DNA from: Oikopleura dioica
Lineage: Eukaryota > Animalia > Chordata
Assembly (NCBI GenBank): GCA_907165135.1
Contig: OU015566.1
Location: 1,054,001-1,118,000 of the forward strand
DNA length: 64,000 nucleotides
Direction: 5' to 3'
Every line of letters starts with the position of its first letter. Positions within the stretch are counted from its first letter, which is position 1. The notes beneath the pieces were generated by a model. That model did no database searches, was not told the origin of the DNA, and worked only from the letters and a program-made list of their open reading frames with translations. A program made the translations under genes and the position numbers. This document shows positions 59,808-64,000 of the stretch, piece after piece.

Positions 59808-62279
59808 TCATACGAAAAATTCTGGTCGATAAATGACTCCTTCATCAAAAACGCAAGACCCGGCGACTTGTAAATTTTCAAACTCGCAGCAAAATCTATT
59901 CGCGTTGTACATCTGAAAAGCTCCATCTCTTTTCTTGCAGCAAAATTCCTCCTTGTCTCCGTCGCCTCCATCGCCATCTCCGGGGCCTCTGAAGCATTGT
60001 GAAAGATCGAAATTGTTGTTTGGAGCTTGGAGTTCCCCATTTGAATCTTGAAATTCAAGGAGCGCCGTAGCGACCTGTTTGTCGCATTCACAAATTTCCT
60101 CCTCCAAGCCGCCCATTTCTAGAAATTTCATTTAAAAAAGATACGCACATTGAGCCTACCGCAGATTTCATTCGCCGGCCAAATGTAATCCGGAACTTGT
60201 GTCCTTCCATCAAACTCCACGCTCATCGCACATCTGATGCATTTCTTCCATCTGAGCAAGACCTTGTCCACTCCATCAACTGGTCTTCCCGATCCGAGGC
60301 CAAAAGGATCATTCGGGAATCCGCGACTGGCGCAACCATATGCTCCGAGAAGATCATTTACGACATCTGGCTGAAAATTCGCTCCAAGTCGCCAGGCGAT
60401 CCAGTCGAAAAGTGGTGGAATTCCGGAAGCAGGAGGAGCTGTAGAAATCGAGCTTGTCGTTGAAGATATTGAGTTTGAGGTTGAAGATATTGTATTGGAT
60501 GTCGAGGAGATAATTCCTGTTGTAGATAAAAAAGGATATTGAAAATTAAAACTAGAATTTTTATCCGAAACAAGAATTTTTGTGGAAATGAAATATCCTC
60601 TCATGAAATTGCTGGAATCGTTGTTGACGATGCACCTCCTGTTGTTGACGAAGCACTGCCAGTAGTGGAGGAGACAACCGCCGAAGTCGAAGAAACAGCT
60701 CCCGGTGACGTTGTAGAAGCTATTCCAGGAGAAGTTGTTGACCCCATTTCTGGCGGAGCTGCTGTCGTTGAAGGGGCTGGTTGAGAGCTTGAAGACATCG
60801 ATATCGTTGTTGTTGTCACGACTTCATCACAGTTCGCTCCTGTAAAACCATCGGGACAGACGCAATTGAAATTCGGCCCATCGAGCGAACAGACAAACGG
60901 ATCGGCGCATGGATTCGACGAGCAGGGCGTTATTTCGCAATCTTCTCCAGAATAACCGTCTTGACAGGAACATTCGTAATCCGTCGTTCTAGGCGGAGTT
61001 GTACATGTTCCATTATGTTGGCAAGGCTCATCTGTTGTACAAGGCGTTATTTCACAGTGAACACCTTCCAAGCCCCAGCAAAGGCAAAAATAACCCGCTG
61101 GCGGATCGTTGACGCAAATGCCCCCGTGCAGACAAGGACCAGCGATTGCTTTATTACCAAGAATAAACTCTTCTTGAAATCTCTCGTCGAGCATCATTGT
61201 TTCTGATCGGTAGCGATTTGTAGAGTCTGGGATTTCCATTCCTCCGGCAATGTGGCAAGGTGTGATTTCGCATCGATCTTTATGAGGATTCTTAATCGAC
61301 TAATTCGGTCTTATTTTAGCCCCTGTTTCAGGAACGGACAGAAAAATCCCGACAAATTTGCGTTGAAATTTTCAACCAATCAGAAGCCTGAATTCGGCTT
61401 ACCGACCAATCAGAAGCCGTAAAGCCGCCCACGCAATATTTGGTCGGTTCCTGATGCCACCCCTAATTTTTGCCCCTTTTTCTATCTTAGTTAAGAATCC
61501 CTGCCTCCATAATATCCTTCAGTACAGGCGCAATCAAAAGTCACGTTATTCACCGTACAAATTCCATCGTTTCTACACGGAACCCAAGAACACGGATCTT
61601 CGTCGCAAAGTTCTCCCGTCCAATCTCCAAAGCAGTCGCATTCAAAATTCTCATTGCAAGTTCCATTTTTGCAGTCAGGACAAACTTCGAAGCCTTCCAC
61701 TCCGAAAATCAACGTCCCAGAAGTCGAGTACCGTGGTTTTCCATCTTAAGAGCGCCCAACTTAAGAGCGTTTTTGCCAATATTTTTCATATTTTGTCATC
61801 TGCAAAAAATCCAACTTTAGAGCGTTTTTGTTCATTTTTAATTTATAATCATAATAATGTTTATTTAAACCTTAAAAATTCATTTAAAAAGATGTTTTTT
61901 CCGCTTCTTTTTAGGTATAATCATTGACCCTGATTAAAGAATCGTAAAAATTTTACCATAAATGGGCAAAAATGACCTCGGATACATTGTAAGAGTTTTG
62001 AAAAGAGCTCATTTTATGCATTATTAGCGTCATTTTTTCCCACTGTTATCCTAGTTTGATCATAAATTTTCCAACTTAAGAGCGTTTTGGTCAACCCTTG
62101 TCATCCGAAAAACGCTCTAAAGATGGAAAACGACTGTAATACGACGTTGTTGTGCTGGTCTCTTCTGTTGAGTAATAACTCGTCATATAGTTCTCTTCAT
62201 CGTTGCCGTATCCGTAAGGGTATTGGTAAGGATTTGCTCTGACAAGAAGTGGAAAGAGTAGTAAAAAGAAATAAATCAT
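59808..62279 (-). CDS. Secreted EGF-repeat / Ser-Thr mucin-stalk / PLA2-like-domain protein
   Basis: Signal MIYFFLLLFPLLVRA; about five EGF modules (e.g. PCRNDGICTVNNVTFDCACTEGYYG); S/T-rich linker; YGCASRG...GSGRPVDGVDKVLLRWKKCIRC; EICECDK; C-terminal CC. Confidence 0.88.
61736..62131. mobile_element. Inverted-repeat element occupying intron 1 of the EGF/PLA2 gene
   Basis: TIR GTTTTCCATCTT(A/T)AGAGCG at both ends. Subterminal CCAACTTAAGAGCGTTTT copies at 61757, 61811 and 62071. Confidence 0.8.
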
Positions 62280-62477
62280 TGACTTGAACTTTTATTTGCA
62301 AGTTTTTGATTTTCTAAGTGATAATTTCGCCGCGCAAAAGAGCATATTCTGGTTTTGATATTTGAAAAGAATTTTTGATTTTCTTTTGCTGAAGTTGACA
62401 AAAAATGAACTTTGCCAAAATTAAAAAGGAAAAAAAAATAAAATGAAAAAAAAACAAATTTTTTTGCAGAAATTTTT

Positions 62478-62811
62478 TTATTTCTCAAAAATGTGCAAAA
62501 TATTACAAACATTAGTAATTACAGCAACAAACAAAAATACAGTAAGTAAATCAGTAACGATAGTCGTAAAATTCCGGCGATCTTCGTTCCATAAGATGCA
62601 TTTGTCGCCGGAAAGATCGGACATTTCCGAGTCTTCGTTGATGAATCTCATCCATGACAACTCGGCGGAGACCAGGTTCTTGAAATTTTTCGCGGAGAAA
62701 TTGCATGTTTCGCGAGTTTAAACTTGTGTTTCTCATTTCATTCCAGTTTCGGCTCAGCGATCTGGCTGCGGTTAGATTGAAGACAACGAAGAGAATTCTC
62801 AAAAAAATCAT
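62478..62811 (-). CDS. Hypothetical small single-pass membrane protein (tentative)
   Basis: Signal-like MIFLRILFVVFNLTAARS and a downstream exon ending in the hydrophobic IVTDLLTVFLFVAVIT. Confidence 0.4.
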
Positions 62812-63335
62812 TTTCGCTTTTTCTATTTTCTTTTGCTTTATTTTATTTTGTGCTTGTTTTGAGCTTTTGGCCAGCGGAAAGTTGTATTTATTCAAAAACC
62901 CGTTTAATTATGCATTTTACAGCGATCCCAAAGAATTAACGAAAAGCTACGTCGGATTCAGGTGCGAAAGTTTTCCATTGTTTCGGTTGTACGGTTCGTG
63001 ACGTTTCGACGTTTCAGGAAATGAAAAAAAAAACTCAACCAGATGTTTCTTTAGCTTTTTCCTGAAGGATTTCCTATGCGGAGAGCTACGTTTTGAAAAC
63101 GTCGAATTTTTTAATGACGACGTAAAAAGTCAATTTGGAACAAACTTGCTACAAACCAAAATTAAAAAAATATTGCATCAATGATGACAAACTCGCCCTT
63201 TTTCAGTCAAAAAAAAAGTTTGCTGTGTAAATTTCTTCATCGAAGTCAAAATAAATTCAGTACTGATTAGTTGCTCAGTCAGGATTATCGCTTTCGGCCT
63301 AATGGCTGCTCGTTGGTCAGGCTCAGAGAGAGATA

Positions 63336-64000
63336 ATGGCGTGGGAATTTAGCTTGATCAAGGTATTTTTCAACTTTTTCAGCCAAAATTTATCTGAAAA
63401 TTCAAGTCGACGAAAAATGTCGCATTTGAGCAACGCTGCGAAAGAGTCCAGAAATGCTCTCCTTCTTCGATTCAGACTGGATCGCAGCTTACCTACTTGC
63501 CGAAAAGTATTCAAGAGGTGATTCAAGATGCTATGGAAGTAACGATGCAGTGGTACGTCGTCGACTGCCCGAAAAGCAAAAGAGAAGCGCTTGATGACCG
63601 CTGGGAGAAACTAATCGGCATTCTTGTCAGCTCAAACAACGAAATCGGGCAAAAAATATCCGGCCTGTGCGTAAAGGTCTCAGAAGGATTCGACCGCCTG
63701 GCGATTTTGATGGACAAAGTCAGCAAAGAACAACGAGCAGAGAGGTTCAACGAGTTGAGCAAAATGCTCGATCTTTCGAAGGAGGAAAATTTCACGATGA
63801 AGACTTTTGCGAATTTCATGAAAATTCACGGCTGGGAAATTGTTGACAACGCGACCCAAAAAGCGCAAGTGAAGAAAGACCCGAAACAATGGAGAATTCT
63901 AGCGCTGGAAAGAAATGAATCCTGGAGTCAAAAACTCAAGTCGTATAAAAATTCTGACATCAAGGAACACATCGTTTCCGCGGATTTATCACTTGGGGTT
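63336..64000 (+). CDS. Protein with apparently tandem divergent eIF4E-like domains (runs off the window)
   Basis: ATG at 63336, a 44-nt GT-AG intron at 63363-63406, then an open frame to 64000. LDDRWEKLIGILV...ISGLCVKVSEGFDRLAIL aligns by eye to eIF4E LDRFWLETLLCLI...VCGAVVNVRAKGDKIAIW. Confidence 0.7.

Follow-up and report, generated by a model that had tools for sequence, protein, structure and literature searches.

A conserved Oikopleura dioica gene with two eIF4E-fold domains predicted in a single chain

Does the gene that begins at the very end of this stretch of Oikopleura dioica DNA join two eIF4E folds in one protein, and would such a protein still hold the mRNA cap? Few translation factors have been studied as much as eIF4E. 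Its fold is a curved eight-stranded antiparallel sheet that is backed by three long helices. The cap is sandwiched between W56 and W102 and is also contacted by Glu103, by R157, K159 and K162, which hold the cap phosphates, and by W166. The dorsal site for eIF4G and 4E-BP involves Trp73 in helix alpha1. To our knowledge, the eIF4E fold nearly always occurs as one domain per protein. In the window, which is the whole stretch of 64,000 nucleotides that was analyzed, the original prediction described a tandem of two such domains with remodelled binding surfaces. Here, the gene structure, the relatives, the selection and the predicted folds of this protein are presented and its possible functions are discussed.

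The end of the window (63270-64000) is the start of a genuine, conserved protein-coding gene of Oikopleura dioica, and all of its parts lie on the + strand. A conserved leader block (63270..63335) is located directly 5' of the start codon and is nearly invariant in the window and in the related loci L001 and L011. Exon 1 (63336..63362) consists of the ATG and 8 codons (MAWEFSLIK; 27 nt) and encodes the N-terminal strand of unit 1. It is followed by an intron of 44 nt with GT..AG borders (63363..63406), of which the donor and acceptor positions are kept in the sister lineages. Exon 2 starts with the remaining part of unit 1 (63407..63838), a divergent, N-terminally short eIF4E-like domain with the terminal signature FMKIHGWE. 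A linker (IVDNATQKAQVKKDP; 63839..63883) separates the two units and is variable in length and sequence, as seen from alignment indels. The start of unit 2 (KQWRILALERNESWSQKLKSYKNSDIKEHIVSADLSLGV; 63884..64000) is cut by the window end and, according to the model of an orthologue, would comprise beta1, beta2 and alpha1 of a second eIF4E fold. The frame of exon 2 is open from 63407 to the window end (198 codons), and the translation of 63407-64000 is letter-for-letter identical to the peptide that had been quoted for this locus. The ATG at 63336 and the 44-nt intron were also correctly called, and the start of unit 2, which had been placed at about 63885, is found at 63884 (codon K160 of exon 2). 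The window part of unit 2 amounts to the first 39 residues only, and the remainder was read from the sister lineages, which are about 70% identical to the window at the DNA level.

An in-frame TAA is present 12 codons 5' of the ATG at 63336. In the window lineage only, an upstream ATG at 63303 opens a uORF of 16 codons that extends over the main ATG; this upstream ATG is absent from L001 and L002. The leader block of about 65 nt is almost invariant across three lineages with saturated synonymous sites. Folding of 63270-63335 gave weak structure only (-8.8 kcal/mol) and no convincing RNA structure. The block is possibly a promoter/initiator or a translational control element. No same-strand gene was found upstream of 63336, and the eIF4E-like gene thus opens a transcription unit of its own. 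On the - strand at 62551-62812 lies a small ORF whose start (MIFLRILFVVFNLTAARS..) resembles a signal peptide, divergent from the eIF4E-like gene and about 520 nt 5' of its ATG, and an EGF-type gene and a GH31 glucosidase gene are located further upstream. A few partly fitting RNA reads were seen near 62403-62469 and 62805-62871. On the other side of the gene, a long coiled-coil protein gene with a C-terminal RING finger is found on the same strand, about 30-150 nt past the stop codon, in L011 (1542-3100) and L002 (1483-3055). From this spacing in L011 and L002, the RING-finger gene is a possible operon partner; the window stops before it.

A protein search with the window fragment identified two relatives in metagenome assemblies. 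Further loci were obtained from JGI metagenomes and Logan assemblies, and an exhaustive HMMER search together with a profile search yielded the distant ones. Two sister lineages could be distinguished, one consisting of L001 and L010 and the other of L002, L003, L011, L016 and L017, each with about 70% DNA identity to the window. The start MAWEFCVIK is common to L001, L010, L011 and L002. The introns of the sister lineages are 52, 61 or 64 nt long and have the donor and acceptor positions of the window intron; such a change of length between fixed borders is what an intron would show, unlike coding sequence. A single ORF of exon 2 spans both units, with 282 codons in L001 and L010 and 392 codons in L011, L016 and L017. 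The product of the gene has about 290-400 residues in the sister lineages, and in at least one lineage unit 2 is followed by a 92-residue low-complexity tail that is rich in Ser, Pro, Lys and Asn. The continuous ORFs in these five loci, together with the fold matches for both units described below, bear out that one polypeptide carries two eIF4E-fold units.

The distant relatives (P0003-P0008, P0010-P0023 and the loci L004-L009, L012, L013 and L015) all come from marine or TARA samples. Their genes contain more introns, and the order unit 1, linker, unit 2 is kept. The proteins start with MWEL.. in L012 and with MSNWEF.. in L015, and in L004, L008, L012, L013 and L015 the frame runs through both units in single exons. 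No named family was found in the sources searched, and there was no match among NCBI or UniRef entries of 82-686 residues. The exclusively marine or TARA origin of the relatives, the very small introns and three lineages at roughly 70% identity are consistent with, although no proof of, Oikopleura as the source, and a nematode origin was rejected. Two candidates from the representative search, P0007 and P0009, are repeat proteins that match a short stretch and were treated as spurious. The P0024 Logan contigs were considered as cDNA; they retain the intron and are genomic.

Several loci show irregularities. In L002 and L003, an A-run at about position 849 is 1 base shorter than in L011, L016 and L017, which gives a frameshift exactly between the units. 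The cause is either an assembly error common to both loci or a true allele from which only unit 1 is made. In L001 (2090-2110) and L010 (4826-4846), unit 2 ends early (..FTKQIIELLDSNR, then stop), before alpha3 and beta7. In L011 (1160-1513), unit 2 runs through alpha3 and beta7 and continues into the 92-residue tail. L014 (255-707), with 92% identity to L001 in the aligned part, also has the long form. L014 (1-905) is a gene copy with two internal deletions, in which the upstream gene passes at its end directly into the middle of unit 1, and unit 1 into the middle of unit 2; the candidate explanations are a chimeric assembly, a rearranged allele and a pseudogene. In the distant relatives L015 (2800-2880) and L005 (1110-1180), introns apparently lack the initial GT, one example being ..CTAAAG|GAATTT.. 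in L015, and in L005 a short duplicated peptide (LIYLSC / LIYTC) flanks the putative intron.

Selection on the gene was estimated as dN/dS by the Nei-Gojobori method. Between L001 and L011, unit 1 has a dN/dS of 0.105, unit 2 one of 0.184 and the linker one of 0.42. In comparisons with the window, the synonymous sites are saturated (pS about 0.77), pN of unit 1 is 0.12-0.15, and dN/dS is 0.17-0.21 for the first 40 codons of unit 2 and about 1 for the linker. Two constrained domains under purifying selection are joined by a free, fast-evolving, near-neutral linker. RNA reads of four runs labelled with the same species were compared with 62001-64000 and gave 8 matching reads, all partly fitting and none on the gene; the neighboring gene was also without coverage. 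Since nothing mapped even on the neighboring gene, these runs, which may come from a divergent lineage, are no test of expression.

The kinship of unit 1 with eIF4E was seen by several methods. The window fragment matches Drosophila eIF4E in a phmmer search of PDB sequences (E 0.016), and the fragment alone gave no match to Pfam IF4E. With orthologues, the unit 1 of 3 of the 15 members matches Pfam IF4E (PF01652) at profile positions 76-156 of 158, with 23.5-25.1 bits and E-values of 1.2e-6 to 5e-5, every score being below the gathering cut-off of 28.7 bits. When the family profile was compared with PDB sequences, 16 of the 18 matches were eIF4E, all in one register (best E 0.0019). An AlphaFold model of both units (L011:338-1270) was made from a shallow alignment with exon 1, the first 9 residues, left out; it has a pLDDT of 57.7 overall and of 67-87 for residues 30-140. 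The top 50 Foldseek matches of the unit 1 model are all eIF4E or 4EHP, and VIA-align superposes the model on eIF4E with Z 9-10.3 over 120-129 residues, from human residue 75 to about 206. Sequence similarity of unit 1 to eIF4E can be detected in the C-terminal two thirds of the factor and takes in helix alpha2 with its LD.RW motif, the strands G..V.V and D+I.I, and W113. The invariant residues of the family itself are concentrated in SEGFDR.., in the helix that follows it, and in the FMK[LI]HGWE motif with which unit 1 closes. The homology of unit 1 to eIF4E is weak but consistent, and its descent from eIF4E is recognizable.

The original prediction described unit 1 as a full eIF4E fold. This does not hold, as the matches cover the later part only (profile 76-156 of 158; human about 75-206) and the protein starts too late for beta1. 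An ungapped count back from the beta3 match places the initiator Met at about eIF4E residue 55, which would leave no room for beta1. Unit 1 probably lacks at least strand beta1, and its predicted fold is N-terminally incomplete. The Phe that had been proposed for the W56 position of unit 1 is putative, as by the same ungapped extension Trp3 (MAWEF) would lie within one residue of this position. The claim of a remodelled cap-binding surface was borne out for this unit, in which W102, E103, R157, K159 and W166 are replaced. In the HMMER alignments, the positions W102, E103, R157, K159, K162 and W166 are occupied by Ile, Gln, Ser, Gly, Arg and Leu, respectively. The Ile at the Trp102 position, already named in the prediction and recovered in the alignments to Drosophila and human eIF4E, is encoded by 63521..63523 on the + strand (exon 2 residue 39), and the next codon encodes Gln at the Glu103 position.

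For unit 2, sequence methods and structure prediction gave different pictures. Unit 2 profiles found no eIF4E among PDB sequences, Pfam gave no match on 19 unit 2 members, neither hhalign nor BLASTP found anything between unit 1 and unit 2, and ESM Atlas features returned only unnamed bacterial clusters (at most 0.88). The unit 2 model was made with AlphaFold on L011:824-1270 from a shallow alignment of fragments and without templates (pLDDT 66.8, pTM 0.64). Two AlphaFold runs with different alignments and no templates gave one order of elements, namely beta1 beta2 alpha1 beta3 beta4 alpha2 beta5 beta6 alpha3 beta7. In the full-length model, the unit 2 part has a pLDDT of 33-60 and the linker is below 50. 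All of the top 50 Foldseek matches to the unit 2 model are eIF4E, and VIA-align places 134-140 of its 149 residues on human residues 39-200 (Z 11-12, rmsd about 3.4 A). In a Foldseek-independent comparison with 48,161 PDB representatives, all 10 chains with Z of at least 8 belong to the eIF4E family (Z 8.8-11.7 over 128-143 residues) and include eIF4E, 4EHP, eIF4E3 and trypanosomatid and giant-virus forms; the next fold has Z 7.1 over 77 residues. The best structural match in the ESM Atlas is an IF4E cluster (TM 0.67). Unit 2 is therefore predicted from these models to be a complete eIF4E fold (beta1-beta7) whose sequence has drifted past profile detection. A profile or fold match for each half had been proposed as a check; it was obtained for unit 1 as a profile match below the cut-off and for both units as predicted folds, but not for unit 2 as a profile match.

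The residue mapping in unit 2 and at the N-terminus of unit 1 was done by eye or from alignment ranges and is approximate. In the window clade, unit 2 has Trp at the W43 and, by eye, the W56 places (KQW..ESW). The distant relatives have, by eye, W-x-x-W and then W at the start of unit 2, as in KKWNIWRREGDEW, which mirrors W43, W46 and W56, and they have ..FEFGIW.. (or FALW) where eIF4E has ..KIAIW166. The statement that unit 2 keeps the first cap Trp (ESW) thus holds, by eye, in this clade, but the distant relatives have Leu or Phe at this place. The beta3-beta4 loop of unit 2, which contains the W102 site, is short and by eye carries no aromatic residue. The helix alpha1, which binds eIF4G and 4E-BP, had been described as apparently missing from both units. 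In the unit 2 model, residues 24-33 form a helix at the alpha1 place, and a short helix remnant is seen in the unit 1 model. What remains of the proposed loss of the eIF4G-site signature is the Trp73-type residue itself: by eye, no Trp is found at the W73 place in either unit.

From these data, the preferred reading, with a probability of roughly 0.6, is that the conserved gene encodes one chain with two eIF4E-fold domains, for which canonical m7G cap binding is unlikely and a role as a pseudo-eIF4E adaptor is likelier. The single chain would consist of unit 1, a short fast-evolving linker, unit 2 and, in at least one lineage, a low-complexity tail. Unit 1 would be derived from eIF4E, would begin at about beta2 or alpha1 and would have most of its cap-holding residues replaced. 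Because the cap residues of unit 1 are mostly lost and unit 2 gives no sign of a second stacking Trp, m7G cap binding would be non-canonical or absent. A cap-independent 'pseudo-eIF4E' adaptor would then be the most likely role, in which both domains may hold protein partners or RNA with their concave sheet or with their helical back.

Some of the same observations also fit a working non-canonical cap-binding protein, which is considered unlikely. Such a protein might act as a sensor or repressor that distinguishes the trimethyl-G spliced-leader cap from the m7G cap, or it might divide the cap and the leader nucleotides or a second RNA between its two units. The predicted eIF4E fold of both units under purifying selection is consistent with this, as are the Trp residues at the W43 and, by eye, W56 places in the window clade, the W43, W46 and W166-like Trp (FEFGIW, FALW) that the unit 2 of distant relatives keeps, and the conservation of K162 as Arg in unit 1. 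In addition, the host lineage trans-splices mRNAs (PMC6883708), and eIF4E3 offers a precedent, as the title of PDB 4b6v describes cap binding without the W56-type Trp and so without the full Trp sandwich. Since eIF4E3 lacks one stacking Trp and yet acts on caps, a lost Trp is no proof of lost cap binding. However, in this gene the losses in unit 1 extend to W102, E103, R157, K159 and W166, the short beta3-beta4 loop of unit 2 has by eye no aromatic residue at the W102 place, and the W56-like Trp of unit 2 is replaced by Leu or Phe in distant relatives. A more specific form, a new 5'-end reader in which one unit binds the trimethyl-G spliced-leader cap in a non-canonical pocket and the other binds the first nucleotides of the leader or a partner, is rather improbable. 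If true, it would allow the sorting of trans-spliced and non-trans-spliced mRNAs for translation or repression.

It is quite unlikely that only unit 1 is derived from eIF4E and that unit 2 is an unrelated small alpha/beta domain drawn eIF4E-like by AlphaFold, so that the protein would be one divergent eIF4E extended at its C-terminus. No sequence method ties unit 2 to eIF4E or to unit 1, and the model confidence is middling (pLDDT 66.8, and 33-60 in the full-length run), both of which fit this view. It is opposed by the identical order of elements in two template-free runs with different alignments, by a match that spans 134-143 of the 149 residues and, among the 48,161 representatives, reaches a Z of at least 8 with the eIF4E family only, and by the W-x-x-W and following W of the relatives that mirror W43, W46 and W56. 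Least probable is a decaying or unexpressed gene or the production of the units as separate products, despite the lack of reads on the gene in the four RNA runs, the one-base frameshift exactly between the units in L002 and L003, the early end of unit 2 in L001 and L010 and the internal deletions in the L014 copy. The dN/dS values of 0.1-0.2 in both units, in lineages with saturated synonymous sites, argue against decay, as do the intact frame across both units in L001, L010, L011, L016 and L017 and in the window to its end, and the unit order that is kept in distant relatives. The RNA result is not informative here, as the neighboring gene was also unmapped.

In the full-text literature, no tandem or double eIF4E protein was found to be described, and nothing beyond general remarks was found on Oikopleura cap-binding factors. 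Two eIF4E folds in one selected, conserved chain, with the cap contacts of the first unit replaced, would represent an architecture that is new for this fold. The host, a chordate relative, trans-splices a large share of its mRNAs, and the gene offers a candidate for 5'-end control of mRNAs that is specific to this lineage. If the protein does not bind caps, it would be the second natural example, after SHLD3, of an eIF4E fold that has been recruited to another binding job.

Compared with the eIF4E family, both units of the Oikopleura protein have the predicted alpha/beta fold (Z about 9-12), and unit 1 also has sequence kinship. It differs from this family in that the protein has two units per chain, its unit 1 is without the N-terminal strand or strands and has replaced cap residues, its Pfam scores are below the cut-off, and unit 1 ends with the family-specific FMK[LI]HGWE. 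The shieldin subunit SHLD3 contains an eIF4E-like domain that does not serve for cap binding and of which the beta-sheet face binds the HEAT repeats of RIF1 (PMC10398656). As an eIF4E-shaped domain without a cap role, it may provide a working model for the candidate adaptor. However, SHLD3, to which no sequence relation is expected, has one such domain and is a nuclear protein of DNA repair, whereas nothing in the Oikopleura gene points to DNA repair. A second comparison is eIF4E3, which is a member of the fold without one stacking Trp and still acts on caps. It differs from the Oikopleura protein in being a single domain and a clear Pfam IF4E member in which the other cap contacts are kept.
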